Positions 3,181 through 61,931 are shown, counted from the stretch's first letter. The stretch is 64,000 nt of DNA from Macrostomum lignano (GCA_002269645.1 NIVC01000952.1:338967-402966), one strand, 5' to 3'. Numbers and translations are program-made. Notes: generated from the letters alone by a model not told the origin.

Positions 3181-3191
3181 CAGCAGGTCTG

Positions 3192-30155: not shown

Positions 30156-31367
30156 ATGCTTTCTCACGTGCGCTCCCTGCCTCCCAGGAGGCTGATACCG
30201 CCCCTGCTGCTGCTCGTGATCGCCAGCCTGCTGCTCGGGCTGTATAATTTCGGCTCAAACAGCTGGCTTCAAGGCATCAAATTCCACGATATCATCCAGT
30301 TCGACCAGAGGCCTGCTCCGGATAGCTTTGTACCGCGGGCCACTATGCCAGCTAAGGCTAAGGGATCTGCACCTTTGCAAGGCCTCGACACGGAGGCTCT
30401 GCGGCGAAACTTCCCGAAGCTTAAAGAAGCCACAAAACGGCACAGTGGGCCGCACAAGGCCCGCTTGGACCAGATGATGATCAGCTACCTGCCGTTCATC
30501 AGCACCAGTGCGTGGATGCTACACAGTCCAAAGGGAAAGAAGTTTACCGTATCGGAAGTTCAAGCTATATCCAACTCCACAATTCAGCCTGGATTCCAGG
30601 TGCCAAACATTGCTCACTTTGTCATGCCGTTCGGCGAAACAAACCTGCAGTTCCACCACATGGTCAGCCTCCTCAGCTGTCTGCACATAATGAAGCCTCA
30701 CCGTCTGCTGCTGTGGTACGCTCCTGGCAAGCTGCCAAGCGGACATTGGTGGGACAGAGTCAGGAAGAATCTGACCGAGTCGGAGTGGGAAGAGAAGATC
30801 ATATTCGTGCAGAGACCGATTCCCACATCTGTGTACACGGTTCCAGTTCACGGAAAAGAGCACCAGTCAGATGTGATGAGGCTTGAAGCTGTGCTCGTAT
30901 TCGGAGGACTGTACATGGACATCGATGTCCTGGTTCTGAAACCGCTGGAGCCTCTTCGGAAATTCCCTTTCACTATCGGCAGGGAGGTTCCATACGGTCT
31001 GTGCAACGGCGTCTTCTTGTCCGCTCCTAGCGGGACGTTTCTGGCGATGTGGCACACGGCGTACCAGGTGTTTTTCGACGGTTCCTGGGTTGACCATTCG
31101 GTGTGGCTGCCAAACACCATGCAACCCATTTTCCCGGACCTGTGTCACGTGGAAGAGGAGAGCATGGACCGGCCGAACTGGACTCCAGAGGAGGTGAGCT
31201 GGATCTATGTAAAAGGACAGCAGAGCAGGTGGGATTGGCGCTCGAAGAACTACGTCATGCACCTGTGGTTCCGGAAATACGGCAAGCAGCACAACATGGA
31301 CAGCATCAAGACTTTGGACAGCATGTTCGGAGAAATGTGTCGTTTTATTCTTTTTGGGGTTTTTTAA
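30156..31367 (+). CDS. GT32-like DxD glycosyltransferase (A4GALT/A4GNT-like), type II membrane protein, copy 1, 403 aa, intronless
   Basis: Short cytosolic tail, TM (LIPPLLLLVIASLLLGLY), stem, then VPNIAHF, HQSDVMRLEAVLVFGGLYMDIDV, LCNGVF, W..HSV.LP, HLW. Confidence 0.9.
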   Translation: MLSHVRSLPPRRLIPPLLLLVIASLLLGLYNFGSNSWLQGIKFHDIIQFDQRPAPDSFVPRATMPAKAKGSAPLQGLDTEALRRNFPKLKEATKRHSGPHKARLDQMMISYLPFISTSAWMLHSPKGKKFTVSEVQAISNSTIQPGFQVPNIAHFVMPFGETNLQFHHMVSLLSCLHIMKPHRLLLWYAPGKLPSGHWWDRVRKNLTESEWEEKIIFVQRPIPTSVYTVPVHGKEHQSDVMRLEAVLVFGGLYMDIDVLVLKPLEPLRKFPFTIGREVPYGLCNGVFLSAPSGTFLAMWHTAYQVFFDGSWVDHSVWLPNTMQPIFPDLCHVEEESMDRPNWTPEEVSWIYVKGQQSRWDWRSKNYVMHLWFRKYGKQHNMDSIKTLDSMFGEMCRFILFGVF

Positions 31368-31924
31368 GCGCACGTTGGATGCTCGTATATCCTTTTACAT
31401 TTTCATGTAGCTCGTACGCGTAATGCCGCTAATTCCTTTGCTTTCTACGGTATAATTTCCGGTAGTAGCTGACCAATCTTCACAGCTTCGCCGCGACTCT
31501 GTCTTGCGAAGGCGAGATCAACTCAGTGGCTTTCCATTATCACACTGTGCTTGTTTCTGCGTTTTTACTTTTCCTTTGCTTTTTAGTGCCGCAGTTGTTA
31601 GCGTGCGTTTAAAAACATAAATATACTCCTGCATGTACATGTAGGTATTTTTTTGCTTTTCGCCAAAAATCCAGCGGAGCTGCATGGCATGTGTGAACTC
31701 AAGATAACTTCTATCAAAAGTGTTTTGGTCACTGGATTGATTAAAGATGCAAAGATTAAAGACCGACTGAGTAGTGTCAATGTCATCGATAGATAAGCTC
31801 ATCTACTGTGTCCTGCTACTTACAACACAATTTGCTGAATACTATACAGCTCGTAATAAAAAACAAAGATTTTCAACATTAAAAATGTAAACTCGCGCTC
31901 TTACCGATACCGAACCATACCGGC

Positions 31925-32900
31925 ACTGGCTCGGCACTTCTGCAAGAATTCAAGTTTTCAAATTGAAAGTGAGTTGCTTCGCATGTACTTTGGTTGGCTG
32001 GCTGGAAGGTCAGGGAAGAGAGACCCCACCCAAAACACGGAGAAACGTTTTTATTTGTACAATACTATCGATGCATTCTAAGAAAATTTAGCCAAACTTA
32101 AAGGTAGTTTAATCAGTCACTTCCGCCGCTCCGTTGTCCCCTGTACAGTCCACGAAAAGGTTCCAGTTGATTCGTCTGCCGTCGATTCGTTTTTGCACCT
32201 TCGCAAAGTTCTGCTGGCCCCCCTTAGGCTTTTCTCGCTGAAAGAAACTGATGCCCACGACCCACCCGATGAAGCGACGGCCAGCTGGTCTTGTATTTAC
32301 ATGTAATTACTGAAAACCGGAATAGGCGCCAGGTGGGAACTTCCAGTCCGACACGAACAAATTCGAACGAGACAGCTGCAACAGATGACATAATATTTTT
32401 TGCCTGTTCAATATTTTTTGGTATTTTTTCAGTGTTATGAGGGTTGTTTAACAATGTCCTCTTGGAAGAAATTTGAATTGGCTTGAAGTAATTTTAGCTA
32501 CGCTCGAATGCCCAACTTATAGTCACTGTGGCGCAGTCTGCTACACTATAATATTGGCTATGCTCATAAACCTACTACACGTATGACTAGTATTGGTTGC
32601 CAGACGATCTGCTTCTCCATTTCAACTGCTCAACATACGAACTGCCGGCAGACGAATTTAATAGCTCGTAGCACCCCTCCACGAAGCACTGAGTCATTTA
32701 GTTGGTTCATTAATTTAGTTTAGGCTAGCAATCAGTTTTCTATATCCTAACATGTCTGTTTTTCCATCGCGTTCTTTTTTTGAAAGCTCAATCTTCGGCT
32801 TGAGTAAAGCGAGTAGGCGTGGCGATGCCCGCAACTCATTTTCCTGCGCTTTTTGCGCAATGTTTTTAATAGTCATCGCATCGCGCTAGACATTAACGGT
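31925..32900. mobile_element. Dispersed repeat copy B (unexpanded relative of 14340-15780)
   Basis: Collinear shared blocks. Only about one degenerate unit of the 51-54-bp repeat (~32490-32570). Confidence 0.7.
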
Positions 32901-33067
32901 TTGCATGACTACGTAATGCGCATAAACTGCTGGGTTTTCAGAATTTTGACGCAAAAAACGCAAATTATACTACTATCTAAAAATGAAGTAAGTAGTATAT
33001 GAAAACGCTATCCTAAGCGTGATATACATGGCATACTTCAATATGTAATCGTATAAGTACATTTAAT

Positions 33068-33150
33068 CCATGTACTCGCATATGTACATTAACCTCATGT
33101 ACTCGCATATGTACATTAACCTCATGTACTCGCATATGTACATTAATCCC
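33068..33150. repeat. 27-bp tandem repeat (ATGTACTCGCATATGTACATTAACCTC) x3, decaying to ~33400
   Basis: Directly visible. Confidence 0.85.
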
Positions 33151-33799
33151 TATCTACCCCAAATTGTATATGTACATTGTCTACTTCTATGTCTACCCCC
33201 AATTCTATATGTACATGTCTACTTGTGCAGTGCATACTTCGATATGTACACTTGCGCATTAATCTACTTCTATGACAATTTCTATATGTACAGTGTATAC
33301 ATTAATCCCCAATCTACACGACAGCCTCCGCTCTGCGTATTTGAATCGTCAACCCCACAAGATTATATGTACAATTCCAACTCGAAACACTAATTGTTAC
33401 GTGTACAGCGCAGTATATGCAGAGGTGGGTCGGTGTGCACGCCAGCTGTACAATCTCATCTACTACTATTCGAATACCAAATGAGTCAACTAACCCCCAA
33501 ATTTTATTAAGCACGTCATATACATTGAATAATTTATTCGAAATCACTTATAAAATACATATGCATTCATATAGAGCCGGGTCCGTATGTACATTCTCTC
33601 TCCAAGCAATGAGGTGGGGATTGCGTCATCCAAGTCTCTCCCCAAGTCTGTCCCCTGAATACAAGACTGTGTTGAAGCAGTGCTTTATACTCGTACTTCT
33701 ATTGACAGTGGGTATGATACAAGACGCTTCGTCTCGCTTTAATTGGTAATTACAGTAAACCATCCCTCGAAGCTCCTTTACTGAATGTTGAATCACCTG

Positions 33800-34280
33800 A
33801 CCTCTCACCTCTCACCTGATATACTGAACTCTGACCATAGCCAAAATTCAACCCCAAGACTGTTCGAAAACAGCCACCCCTCGGATGTTCTCCAAACTCG
33901 TCTTCACAGCGCAGGATCGAGCAAATCGAGCTAAATTAACGCTCGTCCCTGTTCTCTCTGTCCTCCCTTCTAAAAGCCAAGGAATTTCGACCCCTCTCTC
34001 CATTTTCAGTGTTACAGACAGATCTTTCCACAGCACGGACCCTATATTAAACCTCATTCAGCAAAACCCCTCTTCTCCGATTACGTCATCCAGATATAGA
34101 AGCAGTTAGCAAGAAACCAACTTTTGATGCACACATCAACCCCACGAATCTGAGCAAATCCGAGTCCGCCAACCTCTACCTGCATTGACCCAATACCCCC
34201 TGCATCTGTCAATGTACACAGCCTATGAATCAGTGTCTCCACCGCATGCAATTCTGATATACTTGATTCTAACACTTTTG
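33800..34280 (-). pseudogene. Possible decayed non-LTR retrotransposon RT C-terminal fragment
   Basis: SMQVEVGGLGFAQIR resembles the GGLG(L/F) motif of L1/Tx1-type ORF2. No other motif found. Confidence 0.25.
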
Positions 34281-36835
34281 CATATTGTCTCTTACCCTTG
34301 TGTTCGTTATACTAGCTCGTAGAAGTAGTGAAGTCAACATATTTAAATATGCAATTCTACCTCTCCGCCACGCCTCTCCTGCACTTATTTACTTCAAGCT
34401 TTCAGACTTGGTCCTGAGATGGTTTAATCTGTTCGAAGCAGGAATGAAGCATGCACTGACCTCTCCATATACAAAGTCAAGTAGGAATTTCAAACAAGAA
34501 ATTTGGTTATTTTGAAAGCTTAATGACTAGAAATGAGCATTTTTTCATAAGAAAATACAATTTTGCACAGTTTTTAACGACTTTATTGATTAAAATCAGT
34601 AGTTTCATCACCAGAAAACATAGCTACTTTCAACAGCTAATTTGTCCAAATGTCGTTTTCAACTTGACCTTAGACAGCTTTGAAGCAAGAATGAATCCCA
34701 CACGAACATCCACAAGCCAGCCCAAAATCAACCAAAGACATGGCTATTGAAGCCTAAATTGCTAGAAATGCGCATTTTTTCATAGGAAAATACAATTTTT
34801 CACAGTTTTTACGCATTTTTTTACGTTAAAATGCAGACTTTATTGATCGAAATCAGTAATTCATCACTAAAAAACAAAAACACAAAAACACAAAATGCTC
34901 ATCGCTTACTCTCTGACTCTATTCCTGGTTCCACTCATCCTAAAACACAAGTACATGTAAGTTGAGTTTCATAATATTTTCCGTGGAATATCATGCCGTA
35001 TCAAATCATAGAAGATAACAGAAATCAGGAATGTCTGTGTTTCACTACCATCTTGCTTACTGTGCCACCAACTTGGCTATTTTTTCAGACAGACAAAAGT
35101 TTGTAGTTGCACTCAGTCCGGTGTGCAGTCAACTTACACTACAGCACACGTATACATTCTACAGCGGACAGGTTGCAAGCAGACCAAACGAATGCTGTTA
35201 TAACTCAAATAATTTGCGTTCGATTACGTCACATGTAAGAGTGAATATCGCGATCGCCCACCAAGAGACCGGTGCGCCCGCTTAGAAGACAGGGGCACCC
35301 ACCAAAGAACAGTTATACTGTTAGTCAAATGTCGGGAACCCGTACTTGGGAGGCCTGTATCTGGTATTTGCTAATTGTACATGTACATGCGCATGTGAGG
35401 AACTGGTCCCTGTCATCTGTCCGTGTACGCACCTGACATTATAGATAGTCTACTAGATTATATGGGATTCGTTTAACTAGCTTAATTCCCCTGACAATCT
35501 CTCTCTGCGCCCCCAGGAAGCAACGCAAGCGCAGGAAATATCTACGAGCGTCTGAGAATTTTTTTTCTGGAATTCTACTATCTTGTCAAATTTTGAGCTA
35601 AATATTGAGATACGGAAAAAGCCTCAGGCTTAAGTGCCTGAAATGCCTGCTCTTCCCGATAAGCTTATGGGTTGCTGCAGCAGCAGCATAACCTTGAATC
35701 GATTTGCAAAAAATTAGCAACACTTTGAGCATCCGTAGACAACAGCATTTTGTAATACTGCACAACGGCAATAAAATTTTCCTGTCAAAACTGGATCAAT
35801 ACCAGAGCAGAATGCATCATTGTTTGGACTATATTTTCTTATGAAATCGATTTATTAATTTTCAGTTTCAATGCTGGGAAAACCTGGAAAATGAAATTTA
35901 ACTTAGCGCGGATACCCTGCAATGGCGTTTGTTTATTTTTCAATTTGGTTTTGTAAAACATTTAAATAAACTGTTTCTGAAAAGCTTTTGACGTGTTACT
36001 GCTGAACGTCTTGAATAAATCGCACGAATAATTAAGCTTGTGCAGGAATGAAATCTTGCACGCGTGGTCAATCGACAATGGGGCTGACTGCTGTGCGCTT
36101 TTCCTGTGTTTATGCTCTGTGGGTGTCTATCAGGAGGGGCGGTTGCAGCGCTCCCCGCCTCCTCCCAGCCTGAGGCTTCGCTTCTGCACACAGATAATAA
36201 GGGGTCGGGGGGCTGGCTGCACGGAGGTCATGGGGTGGTGGCTGCCCCCCGGCACCCCCTGCCCCCCGTGTGGCATTGTCGATCACAATCTCATCTCAAC
36301 CACTGTGTTCTGTCCCACCAACTGACTGACTATACTCGTTAAAAATTGCAAACAATACGCGACTCCCAAACCCTCGGCCTCACCCGACGCAAAGCCTGCC
36401 CAACCCCGGAGCACCGGTGAGCAAGTCCGACGGATCGGGGCAGGCCAGAGTGAGGTTGAGGGGCAAATAGGAGGCTGCTGCGTGCTAAGCCTGTACAGTG
36501 GAGACGACTAAGCCAGTTTTTTGCATAGAGCACCTACGCCCTAAGAAAGTGTTCGAGCCAACATAAACATTCAGCGCAGCTTACATTTTAGCTGGCTCTG
36601 AGAATAGCGCACGGTATCCATGGTCGCGAACTATAGTGTTTCGGAATTAACACTCCACAACTAAAGCCCAGCTACACAAAAAGCTCGACCTTGGTTTGTT
36701 CTAAGTTTTTGATACTGTCTCTAATAGCTCACTACAGACCTGATACTCTAGAATTGCCGACGTTCGACTAGCAATAAAACTAGTTGACATTGGCACAGGA
36801 GACAAGCAGATGCGGCGACTCCTGCTACTGAATTA

Positions 36836-38036
36836 ATGCTTTCTCACGTGCGCTCCCTGCCTCCCAGGAGGCTGATACCGCCCCTGCTGCTGCTCGTGAT
36901 CGCCAGCCTGCTGCTCGGGCTGTATAATTTCGGCTCAAACAGCTGGCTTCAAGGTATCAAATACCACGATATCATCCAGTTCGACCAGAGGCCCGCTCCG
37001 GATAGCTTTGTACCGCGGGCCACTATGCCAGCTAAGGCTAAGGGATCTGCACCTTTGCAAGGCCTCGACACGGAGGCTCTGCGGCGAAACTTCCCGAAGC
37101 TTAAAGAAGCCACAAAACGGCACAGCGGGCCGCACAAGGCCCGCTTGGACCAGATGATGATCAGCTACCTGCCGTTCATCAGCACCAGTGCGTGGATGCT
37201 ACACAGTCCAAAGGGAAAGAAGTTTACCGTATCGGAAGTTCAAGCTATATCCAATTCTACAATTCAGCCTGGATTCCAGGTGCCAAACATTGCTCACTTT
37301 GTCATGCCGTTCGACGAAACCAACCTGCAGTTCCACCAGATGGTCAGCCTCCTCAGCTGTCTGCACATAATGAAGCCTCACCGTCTGCTGCTGTGGTACG
37401 CTCCTGGCAAGCTGCCAAGCGGACATTGGTGGGACAGAGTCAGGAAGAATCTGACCGAGTCGGAGTGGGAAGAGAAGATCATATTCGTGCAGAGACCGAT
37501 TCCTACATCCGTGTACACGGTTCCAGTTCACGGAAAAGAGCACCAGGCAGATATGATGAGAATGGAGGCTGTGCTCGTATTCGGAGGACTGTACATGGAC
37601 ATCGATGTCCTGGTTCTAAAACCGCTGGAGCCTCTTCGGAAATTCCCTTTCACTATCGGCAGGGAGTTTCCACAGGGCCTATGCAACGGCGTCTTCATGT
37701 CCGCTCCTAGCGGGACGTTTCTGGCGATGTGGCACACGGCGTACCAGGTGTTTTTCGGCGGTTCCTGGAATGTTGCTACCAAACACGATGCAACCCATTT
37801 TCCCGGACCTGTGTCACGTGGTAGAGGAAAGCATGGACCGGCCGAACTGGACTCCGGAGGAGGTGAGCTGGATCTATGTAAAAGGACAGCAGAGCAGGTG
37901 GGATTGGCGCTCGAAGAACTACGTCATGCACCTGTGGTTCCGGAAGTACGGCAAGCAGCACAACATGGACAGCATCAAGACTTTGGACAGCATGTTCGGA
38001 GAAATGTGTCGTTTTATTCTTTTTGGGGTTTTTTAA
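36836..38036 (+). pseudogene. GT32-like copy 2, frameshifted by a net 11-nt loss at ~37770
   Basis: Near-identical to copy 1, but GTTGACCATTCGGTGTGGCTG (21 nt) is replaced by AATGTTGCTA (10 nt). The native C-terminus continues in another frame (ORF 37770-38036). Confidence 0.85.
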
Positions 38037-39546
38037 GCGCACGTTGGATGCTCGTATATCCTTTTACATTTTCATGTAGCTCGTACGCGTAATGCCGCTA
38101 ATTCCTTTGCTTTCTACGGTATAATTTCCGGTAGTAGCTGACCAATCTTCACAGCTTCGCCGCGACTCTGTCTTGCGAAGGCGAGATCAACTCAGTGGCT
38201 TTCCATTATCACACTGTGCTTGTTTCTGCGTTTTTACTTTTCCTTTGCTTTTTAGTGCCGCAGTTGTTAGCGTGCGTTTAAAAACATAAATATACTCCTG
38301 CATGTACATGTAGGTATTTTTTGCTTTTCGCCAAAAATCCAGCGGAGCTGCATGGCATGTGTGAACTCAAGATAACTTCTATCAAAAGTGTTTTGGTCAC
38401 TGGATTGATTAAAGATGCAAAGATTAAAGACCGACTGAGACACGGAGTAGTCTCAATGTTATCGATAGATAAGCTCATCTACTGTGTCCTGCTACTTACA
38501 ACACAATTTGCTGAATACGATTGAACGAAGTTTCAACAGTAAACATGTAAGCACGCTCTCGTACCGATACCGATCCACACCAACGCCGAGAACTGCATGC
38601 ATGCACTGGATACTTAATCGCCTGCCCATGGGTCTCTTGGACCGGCCCTATACGTTCTTCAGTGTACAAGCGTATGCAGCGCGATTGACGAATGCAACTT
38701 GTCGGGTCGGGCGTTAACTCCGGCAAACTCGATATTTCTGGCCCCCTTAATTTCACCTGTAAATAGAGCTATTCACTTCAGACGCATTGGGACCTGAGGC
38801 TTGGAGTTTGGAGAAGGGGCCAACAACTGTCTTGATCTTATATCCTCTCTGATTGGCCGCTTGGATGTGCAGTTGCATGAAATGACAACGACTCAATTTT
38901 GGCTGCCACATACACATAAACTTATGAAGCTCCAGTTGTCAACAAATATTTTGAGTGCCGGTTGGAATCCGGACTGTCATGCATCCATGGTACTACTAAA
39001 CTAACGTGCATGTGCATTTAACATGCATGTTCATGTTTGCTGCCGAGTACAAAATAGCGATACCAATTCAATTCGTCCGTGCAAAACTCGAGGCCATTCT
39101 ACATACTCGGTGTCCCACATCTGGTAGCTCGCAAGTGACATGTGAGCTTGGTTAGGGTTTTGCCACCAGCTAGAAGACGATCTAAGCACATTGCTCTCCA
39201 GGATCAGTTGCCTTTGCTGGCCCTCATTGCCTTCCACAGGCGAGTTAAACCTTACTATGCTCCTACCCTTCCGTTTGATGCTCATGTGCAATCGTGTTCT
39301 TTTTCGCCCTCCTGCCCCGCCCCAACCCTTCCAGTCTGCCCCACCCCTCCAATCAATAATCAATGCGTACGCCACCTCGCACCACCACCCACCCCGTCTA
39401 CCATAAAAAGTGCACGGCGAACTGCATCGGCTACGGTGTGTAAGTTCGTGCTCGCGAGTTACTGTCCTTTTGGGGACCTGGGGGTCGCAGCTTCCCGACA
39501 GGTTAAAGCTGTAGGCGTCGCTTCGGAGGACAGGGCTCACAACAAC

Positions 39547-39564
39547 TGGTGCCGTGACCAGGAT
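39547..39564 (+). promoter_or_regulatory. Primer-binding site complementary to tRNA-His 3' end
   Basis: TGGTGCCGTGACCAGGAT, 2 nt after the LTR; close to the usual tRNA-His PBS TGGTGCCGTGACTCGGAT. Confidence 0.8.
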
Positions 39565-39713
39565 TCTAGTTAGGGTTTCTGTTAGATTTCTGTCTGTGTT
39601 GTCTGGGGTAGTGCAATATTGAATTAGTGATTTAGTGCGTTAGAATTAGTTTTGCATCAGAATTAGCTCGTAGTTTTGCGTTAGAACTAGCTCGTAGTTC
39701 TGTGCAAGCGATC

Positions 39714-40664
39714 ATGGCCAATTTAGACGATCTTATCGGTGCTTTGACAGCGAGAATCCAGGAGCAGTTGAACGTGGGCCAGCGCGTTCCACGTCCTAAT
39801 AAGTATGTGCCGACTCAAGATTTTGCTTTGTGGTTGCAACAGTTTACCACGTACTGCGAGGCTGCTCAGATCCCTGAGGATCAGCGGAAGCAGAATTTGC
39901 TGAGTCTGTTGGACTTTGGCACGGCTTTTAAAGCAGTGGCCAATCTCGAGCTGGATGATGACTTGGACCACGCAGAGTTTGTGGAGCAGCTGGAGGCTCG
40001 CTTTAGTCAGAATCGCACACCCCAGGACTACAAGACAGAATTTCAAAACAGGAGTCAGAGAGAGGGGGAAGCACTAGAGGATTACGCTGACGCTCTCAGG
40101 GAGCTCATGCATGAGGCATATCCGGCTCTGCCAGTGAAGCAAAGGGATGAGCTAGCAAAAGACCGATTCTTGAAGGGGATCCGAGTGCCGGACAGGGTGC
40201 TTGAGAATGTCTTGCTGCAGGACCCTGACATGCTGCAGGCCGCGATCCAGCGAGTGCGCCAGACTCTCGCATCGATGAAGCTTCTGGAGGGAAAGCTGTC
40301 AGTTCACGTGGTGAACAGTCAGGCGGCAGCTGCTGCAGCGGACAGTCAGACAGCTCGCATGGCTGCGGAGATCGCCAGCTTGAAGGCAGAGATCGCGCAG
40401 CTGAAGCAAGGAGGGGCGTCGGCCTTGGCGGTGCAGCCGAATCCGCAGCAGCCGGCAGCCGCGCCTCAGGCGGTCAGAACCTGTGGGAGGTGTCTTCAGA
40501 TGGGACACTCGACGGCGGACTGTAGGAATCGAGTAGTTTGCCTTGCCTGCGGCCAGCAGGGCCACACTCGTTCCAGGTGCCAAAGTCACCAGGCTGCTCG
40601 AAATCAGGGAAACGGGATGGGGCCCGGCCAGGCCAGCGTCCCGGGCGTCGTCTGCAGTGATTGA
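39714..40664 (+). CDS. gag: Gypsy gag with two CCHC zinc knuckles
   Basis: Open ORF; CGRCLQMGHSTADC and CLACGQQGHTRSRC. Confidence 0.9.
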   Translation: MANLDDLIGALTARIQEQLNVGQRVPRPNKYVPTQDFALWLQQFTTYCEAAQIPEDQRKQNLLSLLDFGTAFKAVANLELDDDLDHAEFVEQLEARFSQNRTPQDYKTEFQNRSQREGEALEDYADALRELMHEAYPALPVKQRDELAKDRFLKGIRVPDRVLENVLLQDPDMLQAAIQRVRQTLASMKLLEGKLSVHVVNSQAAAAAADSQTARMAAEIASLKAEIAQLKQGGASALAVQPNPQQPAAAPQAVRTCGRCLQMGHSTADCRNRVVCLACGQQGHTRSRCQSHQAARNQGNGMGPGQASVPGVVCSD

Positions 40665-48660: not shown

Positions 48661-48942
48661 TAGCCATCATCAAGTTAGTATACAAAAAGTACAAGTATAT
48701 ATAATAAATGCAAGTATACAAAAGTACAAGTATATATAGTAAATGCAAGTACACAAAAGTAGAAATATGTACTTGTAAATTATGAAACAATGGCTGCTTA
48801 GTTAATACTGGCTGGCAAACTGAGTGGAACAGGTTTTGTAGATTGTGAAAAAATTGAAATACTTGCAAATGCCGGTGCTACAAATGCCTTGTTGGCTACA
48901 AATTTCGGTCATTGTTTTCTCCGCTGCACTCGCAGGCTCGTC

Positions 48943-51305: not shown

Positions 51306-51423
51306 GACTTGACTTACTTGACTTAGCTGCAGGGGGCGTCCGGCGGATGCAGCGAGGAGGCGGAGGAGACCGCCCATTCCGCTAGCCCCTGGCGACCAAC
51401 GACTTCCGTTGAAGTGGTGTCGC

Positions 51424-54400
51424 TCAGGGGGACCCGTCGGTCTCGCCTGCAGCGCGGTCCTCCTCACCGACGGTGGGGAAGAAATCAGCTCGTCCGGTGT
51501 CCCTGAGGTACCGGGCGAGCAGTGGGATGCTCTCGGGCCTGCAAACGTCGGAGAGAACCGGGTTTGGCCCGAGGTGAGTAAGCCTGGCCCTGGTGAAAAC
51601 CGGGCAGTGGCAGATAAAATGCTCGGCGTTTTCACTGCCTGAGCGGCAGAAGGGGCACCGCTCCTCGGGTACTTGGCCCTGAAGGAAGCGGTGGCGAGAG
51701 AAGCAGCCATGCCCGGAGAGGGCCATGCTAACTGCTCTGAGGTCTCTGCGGTTGAGCCTGAGGAGGGCTCTACGCAGGAGAGGAGAGGGACAGGGGACGG
51801 CAGCACGGGATTGCCTACAATTCCGGGTGTCGTGCCACCTGCGGAGATGCTCGGAGTCAGCCCAGCGCTTAACGCGGGAATTGATCACCGAGGCGGGGAT
51901 GGGGGCACCCGGGCCCGGCCCCAATAGCGCGCCGGCGGAGCCAGCCTTGGCCAGCAGGTCAGCGCGCTCGTTGCCGAGGAAGCCGGCGTGGCCCGGGATC
52001 CATCTGAGCTCCACCTGGTTGCCTAGCGCAAGCCCGTTGAGCTGGGTGTTGCAGTCCAGGACGGACCTGGAGCTGGCGGTGCTGCGGCAGAGGGCCCGAA
52101 GGGCTGCTTGGCTGTCAGAGTGAAAAATAAATTTCCGGCCGCTAAGCTGCCTTCGGCGCAGCTCTGCCGCGCAGGAGCTGATGGCAAGCACCTCGCTCTG
52201 AAAAACACTGGAGTTGAGCCCAGTGTGCTGGGAGTAGCTCCACACCACTTCTCCCTTGAAGAAGACGCAAGCTCCGAAGCCTGAAAGACCATGCCTCATA
52301 GAGCCGTCAGTGTAACAGTGGACTTCAGAGTCGCTCAGCTGTCACTCGCCTCGTGTCGAGGCTGAATGGTGACCTTATACCTTTGGCTCAGGAGAAGGGC
52401 GGCTGGGATCGAGTCCGTGAGGATGTTGAGCCCGCCACACTCCTCGAGAGCCTTGAGGCAGAGGTCAGAGTGCGGGATAAGCGACCGCTTCTTAAAGGCC
52501 CGCACTTTCTTGAAGGCCACCCCAGCATCCAGAAGACGCCGGGTGCTCTTCGCCGCCTCTCCTTTGATATAAATATCCAAAGGAGGGGCGCAGAGGAAGG
52601 CATTCATGCCTTCAAAAGGAGTAGAGGGTGGAGCGCCCATAGTCATGCGGCAGGCTCTGCCCTGGATTTTGTAGAGAGCGTCGAGGTTGCTCTTGACGCT
52701 CAGGCCGCTAGCCCACACGAGGCTGGCGTAACTGATCGAGGGGCGGATGATGGCAGTGTAAATCCACCACAGCTTCCTGGGGGTGAGCCCCCAGGTGGTG
52801 CCCACGGCGCGCCTGATCTGAGCCAGTACAGCCAGGGCTTTTTTGGCTTTAGTTTGAATGTGCGGAGTCCAGTTAAGCCTGTGGTCCAGAGTGAGGCCCA
52901 GGCAGCGGACCTGCTTCTCCATGGAAATATTCTTTCCATAGAGGGTGAGGGGCTTAATGGTCCAGAGCAGTTTGTTGGTAAACATGACTGCTGTGGTTTT
53001 CGACTCTGAGAGTCTAAGGCCACATTGGTCTGCCCAACGCTCCGCTCGTCCCAGAAAGCCCTGCAGAAGGTCTCTGATGGTATCAACCGAGGGGCCCGCG
53101 CATATCGCGGTCACATCATCGGCATAGCCCACCTTGAGAATGGGGTCGTGGAGATCACTGCAAAGCAACTCATCCATGACCATGTTCCAGAGAACGGGGG
53201 TGAGAACGCCGCCCTGGGGGCCCCCTTTCAGGACAGGCACCGAAAGAGAGCTGCCGCTCAGGTGGGCCACAACAGTGCGGTTTCGGATCATGAACATGAT
53301 CCACCGGACAAGGTGAGGGTGCGTGGCCCTGGATTCCAGGGCTCTGCAAAAGGCCTCGAAGATGACGTTGTCGAAGGCCCCCTCAATGTCCAGGAAAAGC
53401 GAGAGGGCAAAGCCGCTGCCAAGAACGGCCCTCTCCAGGAAGTCAACAATGACATGGAGAGCACTCTCGGTTGACCTGCCCGCGCGGAAGGCGTGCTGGT
53501 TCTGCGAGAGTGGGAAGCGCTTCAGCTCGACCGAAAGTAGGCGCCAAAGCACCAGTCTCTCGAGGAGCTTGAGGCAGAAAGAAGTGAGGCTGATAGGCCT
53601 GAAGGCCTTCACCGATTAATAGTCGCTCTTTCCAGGCTTGGGGATAAAGACCACCCGGGCCTCTCTCCATGCAACTGGTACATAGCCCAGCTCCATACAA
53701 GCTCGAAGGAGACGACAGAGCAGGTCCAGGAAGCGGTGGTTTTTCACCGCCTCGTGCAAGAACGCTGGGTAGATGCCGTCGGGCCCAGGCGCCTTGAACG
53801 GGTTAAAGGACCTTGCCGCTCTAATAATGCGGTCTTTGGTGATCATAGACTTTGCTAGGCCTTGCCCTCCCACTGTGTGGTCGGGCGGGCCCTGCTGAGT
53901 CGGAGATTTAGGGAAAAAACTGTTGAGCATGAGCTCTAGAGTCTCTTCCGAACTCTCTGTGACCGAGCCGTCAGGTCTCTTCACAACAGAGAGTTTAGAA
54001 AAACGGTCATTAGTGAGTGCCTTAACCACGCGGGCTACGGGGCGAGAGCCCTCAAGCCCTTCGCAATATTGGCGCCACTTGGCCGTCTTGGCCCTTCTGA
54101 CTTGGCCCTTAAACTCGTGGATCGCACGGGTATAGGCCTCTCTGTCAGATGGGTCTTTGGTTTTGAGCGCTCGCCTTTGGAGGGTCCTGGCTCGGCGCCG
54201 AAGGGCCCCGAGCTCTGGGTTCCACCAGGGAGCAGATTTCTTGCCTTTATAGGCCTTTAGGGGGCAGGCTGCTTCAAAGGCAGTGGTGATCGCCCCGCCC
54301 AGGGAGGAGGCGAGATCGTCCACCACCTGGCAGTCAGAGAGGTCACTGGGGGGGTCAAGATCCCGAAGGCCGCGGCTCAGCTTCGAGCCAAAGGCGGCCC

Positions 54401-55127
54401 AATCGGTGTTTCTGACGTTCCGACTCCAAGTGACCTTAGGCTTTTGCTTGGTCGGCCCAATGCAAAAGCGGATAAAGCGGTGGTCCGAGAGCGAGTCCTC
54501 GTCCCACACTCGCCAGCCCGTAACTGCGGAAAGCAGTCCGGGTGAGGCGATGGTGGTGTCGATGACTTCGGCCCACCGCCCATTATTGAACGTTGGTGCA
54601 TTGCCCACGTTACAGAAGTTGAGGTTAGTGCTGCTGACATAGGCCAGCAGCTCCTCGCCTCTGCTATTGATGTTCTTGCTGCCCCAATGCAGGTGGTGTG
54701 CGTTCACATCCCCTGCAATGAGCAGCTCGAACCGATGGGACGCAGCATAGTCAGTAAGGTTGACTAACGCGTCGCAGACAACTGGGGCATCGCCCGGGAA
54801 ATAGGCAGAAGCTACCAGCACAGGTTTATTGGGAATGAGGTTATTGATTTGAACAACACAGATGTCCCCAGTCGAGAGATCAGGTCTCATCCATGCCTCA
54901 AAAGCTTTTGCAGCAAAGACCAGAGATCTTGGGCGAGGCTGAGAGCCCGCCATGCAAAAACAGTGGTAGCCAGATGGCACATTATTTGGCTTACCTTTAG
55001 TCATCCAGGGCTCCTGTACGAAGACCAGGCCCGGAAGCTGTTGCTCTGCCGTGCGCATCAGGTTGACCGACGCCGCCACGCAGTGCTGGGTGTTGATCTG
55101 CAGACACCAGGTAGTCGTTGGCATCAT
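51424..55127 (-). pseudogene. LINE ORF2 (APE-RT-RNase H-CCHC) with one in-frame stop (53616-53618) and one frameshift (~52335)
   Basis: LQINTQH, VFVQEP, GDVNAHH..WG, DSLSDHR; KAFRPISLTSF, FLDIEGAFD, QGGVLTP, YADD; CYTDGS, HSDSQAAL, WIPGHAG..GNERAD; CPFC..ENAEHFICHC. Confidence 0.92.
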
Positions 55128-56511
55128 TGCAGATCGGATGTTGCAGCCGCCAGGAGTTCCTCCTCCTCCTCGGCGCTCACCGACTTCGGGTCGGGGTCGC
55201 CGGTGTCCATGGGCTCTTCTTCAGCAAAAGGCCCCCGATTGGCCGGAAGGCAGTAGGCAGCGTTCGCCGCCCTTTGCCCACCATCCATGGGGTCCTCCGC
55301 CTCAGATTGGCCCAATGCCCTGGAGCAGCCAGCCGCCTGGGCAGGCGGGTCCGTCTCCAGTCGGCCCTGCCCCGAGGGGTTGGGCCCAGCTGGGACGTCC
55401 CCACCCTCCCTGGACGAACTGGTGCGCCTAGGCGTCCCGGCGACCTCTCGCCTCAGCTGGGAGATTTTGGCGGTACGGACTGCCTCAGCTGCACGCTGGT
55501 ACAGGCCGCGCCGCTTGGTGCTACGCGCCCGCCCTGCTCACTGCCACGGGGAGGGTCGGCCTCGTAGGAGCGGATGCGCAGCTTCCAAAGGCCGACGTTG
55601 ATGAAGCTGCCGTGTGGATAACGCCTCATCCAGGCGTCCGACAGCCCCAGGATGGCTGTGAAGCCAGTGCCGTCGGTGCGCTTAAGGGTGTCATGCACCA
55701 CTAGGCCCGCGGCGGGAAGCTCCCGGTTGACTGCTAGCAGTCCTTTCCGGAGCTCGTCAGCAGAGGTAACAACGCTCCTGGCCGGGACCCAGATTCGATG
55801 CCTCTTGGTCCGGGGGCGCTCGTCCTCTCTGCAGAAGGCTAGGTTGAGGTCCCAGCTCTGCTCGGGCAGCAGCTCAAGGAGCCGCCGACCCGAGTCAGCA
55901 TCACTGGGCCAAATGAGAAGGCACGAGTCCCTCGTCGCATTCGAATGAATGTTCAGAGGCGTGCCCTTCAGAGTTTGCTTCCACAGGAGGCCATCAACGG
56001 CACTTCTCACCTGCTTCAGCTGATCGGGAGACAGGCGCGCGTCCTTTCCCAGGATGACAACCGCCGGTTGCCTCTTTGCCGCATCAGCGTAGGAGGCCCG
56101 GGGGTCAGTGGAGCTTTCTTCAGGTGGGCTGTCCACCCTCCCGGCTGCATCGGCCTCCCTATCCTGGGCAGGGGCTTCCGTGGGCTCGAGGCCCTCTTCC
56201 GCCACCGCCCCAGACTGGGAAGCTTCCGCTGCCGCGGGCCGTTGGCCCCTGGCACCGGTTTGGCTTCCGCCCTCCTTGGCCCGCCTCGCCTTGTTAAGTC
56301 GACGGCGGGCAGCTCCAGAGGTGGTGCTGCGTTTCTTAGCAGCTGGAGTAGCAGGTGTCTTCTCGGAGGCACCGCTCAGAGTTGGCTCCACGGGTCTCGC
56401 CGAGGCGTCCCCGATGGTAGCAGGTGGTATGGCCGAGGAGTCCACGGCCCCAGCCGAGGCCGGAGGCACTGTGTCATCCACAGCCGGTTTGTTACTTCGG
56501 TTAGAAGCCAT
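55124..56511 (-). pseudogene. LINE ORF1, apparently frameshifted near 55500; its natural stop overlaps the ORF2 start (ATGA)
   Basis: MASNRSNK start at 56511; ASYADAAKR motif. An acidic C-terminal frame (to 55124) ends in a TGA overlapping the ATG at 55127. Confidence 0.7.
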
Positions 56512-56986
56512 TGGCTGGAAGTAAAAAGGTGGGACTTCCTGCAGAACACAGGCAAAGAGCCGCAAGGCCGCAACCCCAAACCAAGCGGCAGGCCCCCAAA
56601 AAGCAAAATACCACCCTGCGGGGGACCCAAAAGCGCAAGGGGAACCGTTAGCGACCAGACTACTCCCTGGCCAAGCGTCCATCAGCACGGAGTTACACTG
56701 GGACATTAGAGGGTGCGTTTATGGTCACACCAGGACCCGGCGCCAACGAATCAGCTCGGCAGGGCCCAAGGGGGCCTGCCTTAACACCCACGGGACGAGT
56801 ACCCTTCGAAGTGCGCCTTGCAAGGTGAAAATCAGGAGACAGAGTCTCTTGAGCTATCAGCCCGCCAGGGGAGGCAGGTGTGAGCATCGCTGGCTGGGAT
56901 AAAGGCCATACCAGTCTCATACTGCACAGATAGTTCACCACGCCATTACGTGCAGGACCCGGGGTCCTGGGGGCAACAGCCCCGGC

Positions 56987-57622
56987 CAGCAGCTTGTTAG
57001 TACCATTCTGCGCAATGACAGAAGATGCAATCGACCGAATTGAATTGAGGCTGAACTGTGCCAGCCAGTATGAAATTTGACATTATTTGAGCTTGAGCCA
57101 TTCGATTTTACGAAGCTCAGCGATGCCAGCCAGGCACACCAACTGTCAATTTCCCTTTGCTTCTCCACCAGGTTCTGAGCACTGATTGCGTCAAGTGACG
57201 TGAGTCCGTTTGAGAGATTGAACAGCTTGTCTACTAGTTCACAAAATCGGGCTGTGTGGAGTGCAGAAGCAGATTGAATGACTCCATGAGCGTGATAGGT
57301 TCTTAGAGCTTGCGCCATTCGGGCACATATACATGTGATCAGCGAAGTGCTGACTGCACACCACTGCAGTCGCCCATTTGTGCTCATACTTCTTCCCCAG
57401 GTCAGCACGGAAGATGCGACGAGCCCAGTCTTCACACCTACAGCGTAAAATTCAACATAAATCGTACACAAGTTTTCATGCAAATAATATTAGTCACGAT
57501 TCGACTAAGCTTACCGGGCACGGTTTGAAGGAAAGCTGTGAAACCTGGTTTCTGGTGGACAACGATAGGAATAATTTGGACAGCCATAGGCAGCACTGTT
57601 TTCGCGATTTTGCAGAAGGCAT
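56987..57622 (-). pseudogene. THAP domain and truncated P-type transposase core (5' side of the LINE insertion)
   Basis: ATG at 57622; (C)AAYGCPNY..RFHSFP, then a 77-nt GT-AG intron 57514-57438, then CEDWARRI..VVCSQHF; fused directly to HTARFCELVDKLFN. Confidence 0.8.
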
Positions 57623-59194
57623 ACTTCACTGCAGCAAAACCAAACATCCAAATTCTTTGTGAAAAGACAATGCTGCTGCAAGTAATTCTATTAAATGAAA
57701 TATCTTGTGCTACACACTTGAGTAATAGTCTATGGCTACTTATGTTTCTTCACCGGATTAGTAGTTTGTACGCATATCTATTTCTACGCAGTTTAATTTC
57801 ATTAAATCGCTGATTGAGCATTCTGTGTAAGTTCTGTGCAGTAAGTCCTACGCTGCACTCTTATCATTCGACGGTCGAAATCATTGCGTACGGCTACTAA
57901 AAATCAATATGAGACAATTTACTTGTGCATGTGGGTTTTGTCATAGACAATGATCAATTTTTGCCACTCTCGGCGAAGTTGTCTACCTCCAAAACCATGC
58001 ATACAATCTGCCAAATATTTTACTAAAAAACGACGTTCGGAAAAATCCACTAAAGAATGCAAAAGCAATTGAAAAATTACCAGAACTTCCATTTGCATTT
58101 TTAAACCTTGGCTTGAGTAAAAGAAACTTATAAATTAGCCTCGCACATGTTTGTCCGAGTTCGAGTCGCGAGCTAAACAAATGCCTCGTACGTTTCAAAC
58201 ACGTTCGGAAGTCCAATAGGTGAGAAGTTGTCAGTGCTATAAGCTAAAAACTTCCTGTCTCTCTAATGAACTTCGCAGAGAAAGCGGCCTCCAGAGAAAC
58301 GATTTGTACGATTTTAGGGCGTAGCAACCGGGGCCGTAGGTTGGTGGTGCCAACGGCTCAGGCTCGATTCCAACAGTCATCAATTATAATATTAATTATT
58401 AATCATTAATTATTAGCCAATTAAATTGAAATCTCGGCTCTGCTCGTGCAATTAGCGCCACTGAGGACCAATCCCCAAGGCACAGTGCAGACTTAATTGT
58501 ACATGCCTAACGATAAATAAAGTCCGGGCCACATGTACACTCCTGTGTCAGTGTGTGCCTGTGCGTATGACTGGCGTACGCATCTGCGCGGCTGTGTGCC
58601 TGCTCAGGGGAGTCAGCAGAATAGACAGTGATGCCTCTCACCGGTTGTGTGACAATGTCGCTGAAAGTGCGCCAGGGTGATTTTCAAGACTTGAGATACT
58701 TTTGAGATAATCGAGAAATTGGATCCAGATTCGAGATTCAGCCTAATTTTCATCTAGTAGGCCGGCATATTTGCACTTTTCTCTGTATCAATGTTAATAT
58801 TGGAACTTGTTAAACGTATGCATTGATGATAATAGAAAGAAAAACAAAGATTATTTAATTTTGAGCTTGTTAATAACTTGATTTATATCAAATGTAGTAA
58901 TGTAAGTAAATGATATTGAATAACATCGGCAAGCTTCCAGATTGTTTCGCGATATTATTACTATTTTCAAGTTTGAATCGGTGCCAAAACATAGTGCCTC
59001 TGAGCACTACTAGATAGAGCAGTTTATAGTATTAGGTAAATGGAGCAGTAGCAAATTGGTAGATGGAGCAATAGATAGGGCAGTAAAAGTAGCAATAGAT
59101 GGAACGGTAGATAAGAGCAGTAGATAGAGTAATTTATAGAGCATTTTCTGATGCCATTTTCTATCTATCCCTTTTGGCCACAGATATCATTTTC

Positions 59195-60000
59195 TATCAT
59201 GGCACTGTTGCAGCACCAATTCAAAATAGAAAATAATATTGCTTTTGCAGCCCATTTGGGCTTACGCGCTTTGAATTTAATCCAAGATATGTTTGCCAAT
59301 GTAATGGAGCTTTTGTCTATGGTAGAAAGGCTGGCACAGTGGCATTTCATTTGGTCCAACAAGCATCAATTTGGTCCATAATTTCATTTGCAACTGCTGC
59401 GGAGGAGCAAGATCAGCCCCAGAATTGTGGACCATATGCTAGGCTGTCAAACCAATGCCATTGGCTTGCAATTGCAGCACTCGAAAGAGTTGAGAACACC
59501 CAAAGAAAATTGCAAGGTTGCTGAATGTAAGAAATGATGGTTTACAGCATCCAGCAGCGCGTTAAAACTCTGACGGCAGAGATTGCAAGTCACTCGAGAG
59601 CCTCAAATCCAACTGCTACTCGATGCAGTTGAGACGAATCCTTTTTTGACGTTGCAGAAAATGCAGCAGAAGTTGAGGGAACAGCTCCAGTTGGTTATCA
59701 GATTTCGACTATGAGCAGAAGCGCTGGAAAAGCAACTCAAAATTGTTGGTAGAGACGCTGACATTCCAGCGGTGCGCAACAACCTGCAGACGGTTGAGAG
59801 AAGGCAAGAGTTTGTCCAATGGCTCGCGAGTTTAGTATTGATGCTTGTTGGACCAAATGAAATGCCGCTGGGCCAAGCTTGCCATAGACAAAAGCTCCAT
59901 TGCATTGGAAAACGTATCTTGGATTAAATTTAAAATGCGCGTAGGCCCAAATGGCTGCAAAAAGCTATATTCGGAAGCAAACTGATGATCACCATAACAG
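59195..60000 (+). mobile_element. Tc1/IS630-like transposase N-terminal fragment between ~170-bp inverted arms
   Basis: QLLLDAVETNPFLTLQKMQQKLREQL...PAVRNNLQTVERRQEFVQW resembles an HTH/Tnp region. 59195-59380 is the reverse complement of ~59830-60000. Confidence 0.55.
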
Positions 60001-60348
60001 CATAATATCATAGTCACAAATAGTCATGTAATTTCAAATCTTGACATTTTCGAGATCTTGAAACTGAAATCCAGATTGAAAAAAGTGCCGAGATCTTACC
60101 CGACCCCTAACCACTTCAAAGCACATCTATAAGCTGCGGTGAACGCTAAAAGCCGTTTAGAATTTCAGATCGCAGGAATATTACTTAGTTTTGCGCAATA
60201 GGGACTAAAACATCCCACATGCACATTGTAATTATAATTATAATTCAATAGCATCAACCTACTCCTTTCTCTTACTGCAGTGCTGCCTGTTCTGTCCAAA
60301 GTTCTTGAAACTGACTGCAGACTGCACTCTAGAATTTCCTGACATTCG

Positions 60349-60664
60349 ACTGACATTGGCACCGATTGACATTGGCACCGACTGACATTGGCACCGACTG
60401 ACATTGGCACTGACTGACATTGGCACCGATTGACATTAGCACCGATTGACATTGGCACCGACTGACATTGGCACCGACTGACATTGGCACTGACTGACAT
60501 TGGCAACTGACTGACATTGGCACCGATTAACCTTGGCACCGACTGACATTGGCACCGATTGACATTGGCACCGGTAGACATTGGCACCGATTAACATTGG
60601 CACCGACTAACATTGGCACCGATTAACCTTGGCACCGACTGACATTGGCACCGATTGACATTGG
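60349..60664 (+). repeat. 16-bp VNTR (GACATTGGCACCGACT)n, ~20 units, ending 50 nt before the ATG of GT copy 4
   Basis: Same unit and same 50-nt spacer as copy 1. Confidence 0.95.
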
Positions 60665-60713
60665 ACGGGAGACGAGCAGGCGCGGTGTCTTCTACTAATG
60701 ACTTAAATTCTTC

Positions 60714-61931
60714 ATGCTTTCTCACGTGCGCTCCCTGCCTCCCAGGAGGCTGATACCGCCCCTGCTGCTGCTCGTGATCGCCAGCCTGCTGCTCGGGCTG
60801 TATAATTTCGGCTCAAACAGTTGGCTGCAAGGCATCAAATACCACGATATCATCCAGTTCGACCAGAGGCCTGCTCCGGATAGCTTTGTACCGCGGGCCA
60901 CTATGCCAGCTAAGGCTAAGGGATCTGCACCTTTGCAAGGCCTCGACACAGAGGCTCTGAGGCGAAACTTCCCGAAGCTTAAAGAAGCCACAAAACGGCA
61001 CAGCGGGCCGCACAAGGCCCGCTTGGACCAGATGATGATCAGCTACCTGCCGTTCATCAGCACCAGTGCGTGGATGCTGCACAGCCCAAACGGGAAGAAG
61101 TTTACCGTATCGGAAGTTCAAGCTGTATCCAATTCCACAATTCAGCCTGGATTCCAGGTGCCAAACATTGCTCACTTTGTCATGCCGTTCGGCGAAACAA
61201 ACCTGCAGTTCCACCACATGGTCAGCCTTCTCAGCTGTCTGCACATAATGAAGCCTCACCGTCTGCTGCTGTGGTACGCTCCTGGCAAGCTGCCAAGCGG
61301 ACATTGGTGGGACAGAGTCAGGAAGAATCTGACCGAGTCGGAGTGGGAAGAGAAGATCATATTCGTGCAGAGACCGATTCCCACATCCGTGTACACGGTT
61401 CCAGTTCACATAAATCAGCACCAGGCAGATGTGATGAGGCTTGAAGCTGTGCTCTTATTCGGAGGACTGTACATGGACATCGATGTCCTGGTTCTGAAAC
61501 CGCTGGAGCCTCTTCGGAAATTTCCTTTCACTATCGGCAGGGAGGTTCCATACGGTCTGTGCAACGGCGTCTTCTTGTCCGCTCCTAGCGGGACGTTTCT
61601 GGCGATGTGGCACACGGCGTACCAGGTGTTTTTCGACGGTTCCTGGGTTGACCACTCGGTGTGGCTGCCAAACACCATGCAACCCATTTTCCCGGACCTG
61701 TGTCACGTGGAAGAGGAAAGCATGGACCGGCCGAACTGGACTCCAGAGGAGGTGAGCTGGATCTATGTAAAAGGACAGCAGAGCAGGTGGGATTGGCGCT
61801 CGAAGAACTACGTCATGCACCTGTGGTTCCAGAAGTACGGCAAGCAGCACAACATGGACAGCATCAAGACTTTGGACAGCATGTTCGGAGAAATGTGTCG
61901 TTTTATTCTTTTTGGGGTTGTTTCAATTTAG
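60714..61931 (+). CDS. GT32-like copy 4, 405 aa, intact
   Basis: Differs from copy 1 at 9 internal residues and at the C-terminus (FGVVSI versus FGVF). Confidence 0.9.
   Translation: MLSHVRSLPPRRLIPPLLLLVIASLLLGLYNFGSNSWLQGIKYHDIIQFDQRPAPDSFVPRATMPAKAKGSAPLQGLDTEALRRNFPKLKEATKRHSGPHKARLDQMMISYLPFISTSAWMLHSPNGKKFTVSEVQAVSNSTIQPGFQVPNIAHFVMPFGETNLQFHHMVSLLSCLHIMKPHRLLLWYAPGKLPSGHWWDRVRKNLTESEWEEKIIFVQRPIPTSVYTVPVHINQHQADVMRLEAVLLFGGLYMDIDVLVLKPLEPLRKFPFTIGREVPYGLCNGVFLSAPSGTFLAMWHTAYQVFFDGSWVDHSVWLPNTMQPIFPDLCHVEEESMDRPNWTPEEVSWIYVKGQQSRWDWRSKNYVMHLWFQKYGKQHNMDSIKTLDSMFGEMCRFILFGVVSI

Follow-up and report, generated by a model that had tools for sequence, protein, structure and literature searches.

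Two kinds of described system bear on the gene array reported here. Clusters of tandem glycosyltransferase genes that evolve by duplication and gene conversion are represented by the human FUT3-FUT5-FUT6 cluster, and true cassette or diversity-generating systems are represented by trypanosome VSG, Neisseria pilE/pilS, Borrelia vlsE, and the diversity-generating retroelements (DGRs). Macrostomum lignano is a free-living flatworm whose genome is repeat-rich, redundant, and neopolyploid. We analyzed a 64,000-nucleotide stretch of that genome (GCA_002269645.1, NIVC01000952.1:338967-402966; called the window below, with positions counted from its first letter), which carries an array of GT32-like glycosyltransferase genes. 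An earlier reading of this DNA, made from the sequence alone, had interpreted the array as a diversifying cassette system that generates a repertoire of enzymes. We consider it very likely, however, that the glycosyltransferase genes of this locus, which are of Golgi type, have a single exon each, number at least five, and include one that is broken, form an ordinary tandem family undergoing concerted evolution by gene conversion. Like FUT3-FUT5-FUT6, which belongs to a different glycosyltransferase family, the array consists of same-strand paralogues with a single coding exon, mosaic similarity, homogenised catalytic regions, divergent stems, and occasional pseudogenes. It resembles VSG, pilE/pilS, vlsE, and the DGRs in that short tracts are copied between related sequences with conserved flanks, but it differs from them in that we found no single expression site, no silent partial donors, no hypervariable segment in which omega (the ratio of nonsynonymous to synonymous divergence, dN/dS) exceeds 1, no adenine-biased mutagenic reverse transcriptase (RT), and, in the germline assembly sequence compared, no sign that exchange takes place within an individual. 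The mechanism is in this respect ordinary, because tandem duplication, gene conversion, and pseudogenisation of glycosyltransferase families are well known, and it offers no new route to diversity. Species-specific glycosyltransferase duplications are recognised in flatworm genomes, and the survey that reports them lists GT10, GT14, GT23, GT31, and beta-1,4-galactosyltransferases, not GT32, with Macrostomum appearing only in its references (bioRxiv 10.1101/2024.02.05.578899). A literature search returned no mention of the four gene identifiers and no description of Macrostomum glycosyltransferases.

We refer to the members of the array as c1 to c5 and to their counterparts on a second contig, NIVC01000506.1, as c1h, c2h, c4h, and c5h; codon and residue positions follow the numbering of c1. 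The members are as follows.
30156-31367, plus strand: c1, type A, intact, single exon, 403 amino acids (open reading frame [ORF] with a PF04488 match)
36836-38092, plus strand: c2, type A variant, 418-amino-acid ORF, frameshifted, probable pseudogene
48943-50118, plus strand: c3, type B mosaic, 391 amino acids if counted from its ATG (TTG 48889 is where the ORF opens)
60714-61931, plus strand: c4, type A, intact, 405 amino acids
63709-64000, plus strand: 5' end of c5, type B, 468 amino acids in full, cut at the end of the window

The complete ORF of c5 (468 amino acids) lies at 12996-14402 of an overlapping stretch, L001, positions 1-13287 of which are identical (100%) to window positions 50714-64000. 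Four same-strand intronless GT32 paralogues had been claimed from the sequence alone; four ORFs are indeed present at those places and match PF04488, but the count was wrong, since a fifth copy begins at 63709. The sequence variants quoted in support of that claim are all there as well (HGKEHQS/HGKEHQA/HINQHQA, PFTIGREVPY/..REFPQ/VCTIGREVPY, and FFDGSWVDHSVW/FNDEAWGEHSVK). Searches with tblastn revealed no additional copies or fragments within the 64-kb window besides those listed. All copies are full length and have an ATG and an anchor helix of their own, as well as distinct upstream sequence.

The similarity between some of the copies extends beyond their coding sequences. c1 and c4 share 96.2% DNA identity across 29831-31365, including an upstream minisatellite, and c1 and c2 share 96.8% across 30153-31842, including 475 bp of 3' flank. 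DNA of c3 can be aligned to the other copies over only ~850 bp, at ~90% identity. The shared noncoding features are the following.
31368-31842 (c1) and 38037-38518 (c2), plus strand: 3' flank common to c1 and c2
29837-30106: 16-bp minisatellite (GACATTGGCACCGACT, ~16.5 units) directly upstream of c1, found with Tandem Repeats Finder (TRF)
60347-60664: 16-bp minisatellite (GACATTGGCACCGACT repeat, ~20 units) upstream of c4, found with TRF

Because c1 and c2 have a 3' flank in common, the duplicated unit was genomic DNA of ~1.7 kb and not an independent retrocopy. The minisatellites of c1 and c4 lie no more than ~50 bp from the start codon, c2 retains only a remnant, and upstream of c3 there is a different minisatellite with a 29-bp unit (48455-48666). 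The stem of c5 contains 33-bp repeats encoding 11 amino acids (TPKTGHKTDSQ; TRF period 33 at 63920-64000); c5h and P0014, on the other two contigs, have one unit less, so that the length of the stem differs between genome versions.

Comparison with other versions of the locus showed that the array is a real tandem. NIVC01000506.1 repeats the gene order, with c1h and c2h (L005) followed by c4h and c5h (L002) and with flanks that are ~96.5-97% identical; this comparison covers the four copies named, the counterpart of c3 being left out (NIVC01000506.1 189917-195364 not included). A third version of c5, on NIVC01001447.1, is 99.4% identical to that of the second contig. Every copy is nearest to its positional counterpart (dS of 0.031 for c1/c1h, 0.027 for c4/c4h, and 0.057 for c5/c5h), orthologous dS between contig versions is 0.03-0.09, and dN/dS for c1 versus c1h is 0.03. 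Since the copies are closest to their positional counterparts, the paralogues must be older than the split of the genome versions and are not mis-joined haplotypes. The claim of a genuine tandem array was thus borne out by a second contig with equal paralogue order. Three subgenomes have been described for M. lignano (PMC10733133), and the existence of several locus versions fits that report. The mean number of introns per gene in the Mlig_3_7 assembly, GCA_002269645.1, is 4.9 (PMC5730564).

Two old types can be told apart among the copies, type A (c1, c2, and c4) and type B (c3 and c5), and the divergence between them is mosaic. Nei-Gojobori estimates, made by segment for c1 versus c3 and for c1 versus c5, were as follows.
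Codons 1-142 (tail, anchor, and stem): dS of 1.40 for c1 versus c3
Codons 143-305 (catalytic core; c1 30582-31070, plus strand): dS of 0.046 for c1 versus c3
Codons 306-326 (c1 31071-31133, plus strand): dS saturated for c1 versus c3, dN of 0.30
Codons 327-373: dS of 0.13 for c1 versus c3 and 0.49 for c1 versus c5
Codons 374-403: dS saturated for c1 versus c3

The dS pattern for c1 versus c5 is like that for c1 versus c3, except that codons 327-373 have diverged too. The contrast in synonymous differences between the core and the divergent segments is highly significant (Fisher p 1e-9 to 1e-22). Between approximately codon 97 and codon 325 no difference separates c3 from c5, whereas beyond that point they diverge, and c3 is itself a mosaic, with an N terminus of its own, type-A-like sequence at codons 327-373, and a final 30 codons that are again its own. 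The core is identical even at synonymous sites, and because purifying selection on the protein cannot keep such sites alike, this identity points to recent exchange of DNA. The near-identical catalytic scaffold remarked on in the sequence-only reading is therefore present as similarity, but it is not a sign of protein constraint, because the synonymous sites match too.

In line with exchange between paralogues, five sites carry private alleles that are unique to one contig yet common to two paralogues on it: c1 and c4 at codon 162, c2 and c5 at codon 168, c1h and c2h at codon 197, c4h and c5h at codon 214, and c2h and c4h at codon 131. Furthermore, the otherwise type-A c4h contains a type-B tract of four sites at codons 271-274 (the 'VC' patch), which includes two synonymous changes. 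As judged by these alleles and this tract, interlocus gene conversion is still ongoing, in germline sequence and on an evolutionary timescale. Short patches are thus shuffled among the copies, as the 'VC' tract in c4h shows, but the shuffling is visible only between germline versions of the locus. The net outcome of the exchange is a homogenised catalytic core.

The patch around the W..HS motif (FFDGSWVDHSVW versus FNDEAWGEHSVK, codons 306-326) behaves differently from the core, with saturated dS between the types. Its type-B state matches that of the outgroup paralogues P0002 and P0003, and its type-A state is derived. To judge from this divergence, the patch is an old island spared by conversion and not a freshly diversified site. 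The biggest differences between copies lie outside the three variable patches altogether, in the anchor and stem (codons 1-142) and in the last 30 codons, and the intact copies differ most in anchor and stem (including the 11-amino-acid repeat of c5) and less in the catalytic patches.

These data suggest the following history for the locus. Duplication of genomic segments of ~1.5-1.7 kb, each bearing a single-exon gene, would have given rise to the two old types, and a Gypsy-type long terminal repeat (LTR) retrotransposon and a long interspersed nuclear element (LINE) would later have pushed the copies apart. Neighbouring copies trade short tracts by interlocus conversion, such that the catalytic core is overwritten repeatedly, and the anchor and stem, the helix at 306-326, and the C-terminal end retain the old A/B divergence. 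In this reading, some of the variable patches are islands that were not erased and others short tracts imported from another copy, all of them at positions weakly constrained across the family. Individual copies decay independently in different versions of the genome (c2 here, c4h there). One modest use of the locus lies in the documentation of ongoing interlocus conversion by comparison of subgenome versions in a neopolyploid flatworm.

c2 carries an 11-bp deletion, equivalent to c1 31089-31099 and placed by nucleotide alignment between c2 bases 37768 and 37769. The deletion shifts the frame for the last ~90 codons, and the ancestral stop would fall at 38034-38036. The final ~107 residues of the 418-amino-acid ORF are an out-of-frame read-through, and this tail is without H331, P340, H369, G392, and R396, positions at which 79 family members agree either without exception or to at least 90%. 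Consistent with this, c2 falls into two frames in tblastn. c2 is most likely a pseudogene, as indicated by its frame, and the W..HS motif said to be 'deleted' in this copy has in fact been hit by the 11-bp frameshifting deletion, not by an in-frame loss. On the second contig, c2h is intact, with a 9-bp insertion, and c4h has a 1-bp deletion and is frameshifted; c4 is intact in the window. The broken copy therefore differs between the two locus versions (L002 294-1500 and L005 17691-18908 on NIVC01000506.1).

PF04488 scores are 30.1-34.3 bits for c1-c4 and 31.4 bits for c5 (cut-off 23), there is no other Pfam match in c1-c4, and the PF04488 match spans only model positions ~50-87, the ~35-residue DxD region. 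D239, R242, G250, G251, Y253, D255, and D257 are found in all copies, with no codon change at these positions; among the 79 family members, conservation of R242, G250, G251, Y253, D255, and D257 is either complete or no lower than 90%, and the family-wide entropy of D239 is low (0.7 bits). Modelling of c1 with AlphaFold2 on the basis of 79 homologues gave a confident structure (predicted local distance difference test score 90.3, predicted template modelling [TM] score 0.83), in which an N-terminal helix at 16-34 is followed by a stem of low confidence and, from approximately residue 78 to 403, by a compact domain. In this model, patch 1 caps the helix 234-249, patch 2 lies over the hairpin 272-289, and patch 3 is the helix 308-325. 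When the model was compared with the PDB by Foldseek, the top 50 matches were all GT-A transferases of the retaining kind (probability 1.0, target-normalised TM up to 0.54), among them GT8 proteins, glycogenin, XXYLT1, the UGGT catalytic domain, YeGT, PaToxG, and SetA. A single-sequence search of the PDB matched nothing relevant. Matches of the family profile to PDB sequences are confined to ~24-70 residues around the DxD motif, where profile positions 166-189 align with TcdB 267-290 and place D239, R242, Y253, D255, and D257 of c1 on D270, R273, Y284, D286, and D288 of the toxin, which are its UDP-glucose/Mn2+ residues. The predicted protein of each intact copy begins with a short cytoplasmic tail followed by a signal-anchor helix, and a variable stem connects these to the GT-A catalytic domain. 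Overall, the intact copies are most likely Golgi-resident, metal-dependent, retaining nucleotide-sugar glycosyltransferases, as suggested by fold and motif, with retention of configuration inferred from the fold neighbours. The original description of GT32-like single-exon DxD enzymes agrees with these results, in that PF04488 scores lie above the cut-off, a type II anchor is predicted, and the GT-A model has retaining neighbours.

With the CAZy family GT32/PF04488 (Och1, Sur1, A4GALT, and A4GNT), the copies have in common the PF04488 match, the D..R...GG.Y.DxD motif, the type II anchor, and the GT-A model with its retaining-type neighbours. They differ in that Och1 is matched only weakly and that their nearest relatives are uncharacterised. 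As for the A4GALT/A4GNT subfamily, in which PF04572 (Gb3_synth) follows PF04488, a search of c1 with the threshold relaxed to E<=1 gave no PF04572 match. The UniRef label 'alpha-1,4-N-acetylglucosaminyltransferase' is accordingly not backed, as the Gb3_synth C-terminal domain was not found. With TcdB, SetA, YeGT, PaToxG, glycogenin, and XXYLT1 the copies have in common the fold and the DxD-region motif, including the five aligned catalytic residues of TcdB, but at 10-20% identity and TM-scores of 0.25-0.54 this is likeness at the level of the fold and not family membership. Word-index protein searches gave few matches outside M. lignano, and an exhaustive search gave 2260 relatives. Those that could be named are uncharacterised proteins of nemerteans, an annelid tubeworm, the snail Littorina, and amphioxus, together with further M. 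lignano paralogues, and their names are only 'uncharacterized' or automatic labels. The copies belong, by sequence, to an uncharacterised invertebrate PF04488 clade. The locus draws attention to this clade across marine invertebrates, and its A/B islands suggest where determinants of specificity might be sought.

Tests of selection give no sign of diversifying selection. dN/dS is below 1 in every pair and segment compared; whole-gene values are 0.03-0.5 for most pairs and reach ~0.7 for c3 versus c5, a value that includes poorly aligned N termini. Amino acid differences among the four copies do cluster within the core (codons 143-305) beyond random placement (P ~0.013), and to that extent variation is focused in the same short patches, as had been claimed, but the largest differences are in the N terminus and the last 30 codons. 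For further comparisons the patches were pooled (codons 232-248, 270-280, and 306-326) and set against the rest of the catalytic domain among c1-c4. Synonymous changes are ~2 times denser in the patches than elsewhere, and synonymous sites lie nearer to nonsynonymous ones than expected at random (2.75 versus 8.58 codons, P=0.0005). This co-clustering of synonymous and nonsynonymous changes fits imported or unconverted tracts and not selection on single residues. Across nine copies, the variable positions have a family entropy of 2.65 versus 2.05 bits (p=1.4e-4; 73 distant homologues), suggesting that they are generally tolerant positions of the family.

Several observations weigh against our interpretation. 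The first two concern the enzyme assignment: the TM-scores of the structural neighbours are modest (0.25-0.54), and Och1, the only solved GT32 member matched, is matched weakly (E=0.04). Among c1-c4, moreover, nonsynonymous and synonymous changes (N:S) number 24:13 in the patches versus 12:26 elsewhere (Fisher p=0.006), corresponding to omega values of ~0.55 and ~0.15, respectively (calculated from ~3.4 nonsynonymous sites per synonymous site). The patches were picked by their amino acid variability, and the N:S contrast is therefore biased upward; nevertheless, it leaves room for some adaptive divergence in the patches. An omega of ~0.55 is still below 1, and with synonymous changes clustering at the same places, the term 'diversifying' does not suit these patches. 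A further difficulty is a cluster unique to c4, GGAAAAGAG>ATAAATCAG (GKE>INQ, 61410-61418), directly before the D239/R242 helix, which comprises four nonsynonymous and zero synonymous changes in nine bases and which c4h does not have. No donor for it was found in the window at up to 3 mismatches, and INQ occurs in no retrieved paralogue; the cluster has the look of one multi-nucleotide mutation or of a conversion whose donor was not seen. Finally, the public gene models of the locus are chimeric and cannot tell which copies are transcribed. As a candidate donor of the c2-type patches we also considered P0005, which has M243 and Q280 in common with them; at 42% amino acid identity it was judged too divergent, with the DNA not compared.

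Could the islands be functional? The two types, and perhaps the c2 type, might differ in donor or acceptor specificity, with selection removing those conversions that erase specificity segments; the candidate segments would be the helix 306-326, the C-terminal end, and the patch at 271-272. Converted sequence abuts the islands at sharp boundaries, island 306-326 flanks the conserved W311 and H314-S315, and both types are retained in two versions of the locus. In that island, where P0002 and P0003 agree, there are 4 A-unique versus 0 B-unique replacements, including K317W, but this relative-rate contrast is not significant. Likewise, N:S in the patches is above that of the rest, but island dN/dS is well below 1 (dN 0.30, dS saturated), the patch positions are variable across the whole family, and short conversion tracts leave islands by chance as well. 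The boundaries, the derived type-A helix, and the patch N:S allow for selective upkeep of the islands, none of them being significant alone. Taken together, such adaptive subfunctionalisation seems to us unlikely. Its most specific form, in which the conversion-spared islands are the specificity determinants of two distinct enzymes, kept by selection against conversion and clearest in helix 306-326 (W311/H314/S315), we regard as doubtful, and slightly more so than the general proposal. If it were true, the array would amount to a natural swap experiment marking the residues by which the enzymes of this uncharacterised, GT32-like clade of invertebrates choose donor or acceptor.

The public models raise a second alternative, namely that neighbouring copies are cotranscribed and spliced such that copy n supplies the anchor and stem and copy n+1 the catalytic domain, yielding combinatorial enzymes. 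All three public models on the contig are chimeras of this kind. PAA74387.1 (Mlig001348g2), our P0013, consists of c1 and an out-of-frame c2 tail (window 30156-38079); PAA74388.1 (Mlig007681g1), P0011, combines c3 (155 amino acids) with c4 (265 amino acids; window 48943-61931); and PAA74389.1 (Mlig029296g1), P0001, combines c4 (167 amino acids) with c5 (263 amino acids), running from 60714 to beyond the end of the window. Polycistronic transcription units do exist in M. lignano, but the annotation was built in part on a de novo transcriptome (PMC5730564). The junctions of P0011 and P0001 fall in a 27-amino-acid identical stretch with CAG|GTG, usable as both donor and acceptor, that is, in inter-copy identical sequence, where transcript assemblers often make chimeras, and P0013 enters c2 from c1 in the wrong frame, so that its tail is nonsense. 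Splicing between copies is thus very improbable, and the chimeric models are most likely artefacts of transcript assembly. The locus should be re-annotated, with P0013, P0011, and P0001 replaced by five separate single-exon genes, one of them broken.

Even less probable is the programmed, cassette-like diversity-generating locus envisaged in the sequence-only reading, which would produce a repertoire of enzymes. It is true that short patches have been swapped between copies and that amino acid differences cluster near the catalytic motifs. Every copy is a complete gene, however, there being no silent partial donors among them, and one of these genes is a pseudogene; omega remains below 1, the core is homogenised, and synonymous changes cluster with the amino acid changes. 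There is no directed mutagenesis in the substitution spectrum, which shows no adenine bias (14/86 substitutions from A) and is dominated by transitions, and the RT ORFs between the copies are those of a Gypsy-type element and a LINE and are not of the DGR type. Exchange, moreover, becomes visible only when germline versions of the locus are compared, on an evolutionary timescale. The data do not support the cassette interpretation; the array itself is genuine, and its evolution is ordinary concerted evolution.

Scarcely credible, lastly, is an assembly artefact in which uncollapsed haplotypes or subgenome versions were wrongly set in tandem, for although the redundancy of Mlig_3_7 is known (180 Mb lie in non-repetitive blocks with identities of 95% or more; PMC5730564), the flanks of the copies are unrelated, their N termini and transposon insertions differ, and an independent contig shows an identical order of distinct paralogues, each nearest to its positional counterpart.

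The intervals between the copies are occupied in part by transposons.
39285-45617, plus strand: Gypsy-type LTR retrotransposon between c2 and c3, with gag, protease, RT, RNase H, and integrase
51424-56706, minus strand: LINE between c3 and c4, with long open endonuclease, RT, and RNase H ORFs

The LTR segments of the Gypsy element (39285-39390 and 45512-45617) are 98% identical, and both the Gypsy element and the LINE look like recent insertions. The LINE seemingly sits between two ORF fragments on the minus strand, 50490-51077 and 56935-57483, the second of which has a weak TNP-like match (P-element-type transposase, E=0.0026). Elsewhere in the window are neighbours with no relation to the array: a GIY-YIG nuclease ORF at 21136-21735 (minus strand) may be part of a Penelope-like element, 9785-11353 (plus strand) contains protein kinase exons, GSK3-like by eye, interrupted by a proline/threonine/histidine-rich repeat region, and at 3807-4685 (minus strand) a methyltransferase exon of the TRM5/TYW2 type is fused with a repeat-rich ORF. 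Kilobase-scale simple repeats (GACA/GACAGACA-type, then GA-rich) flank the region on both sides, at ~490-2720 and at L001 17900-18920, and the GACA/GACAGACA-type arrays yield long spurious ORFs of the form 'LSVCLSVC' and 'DRQTDRQT'.

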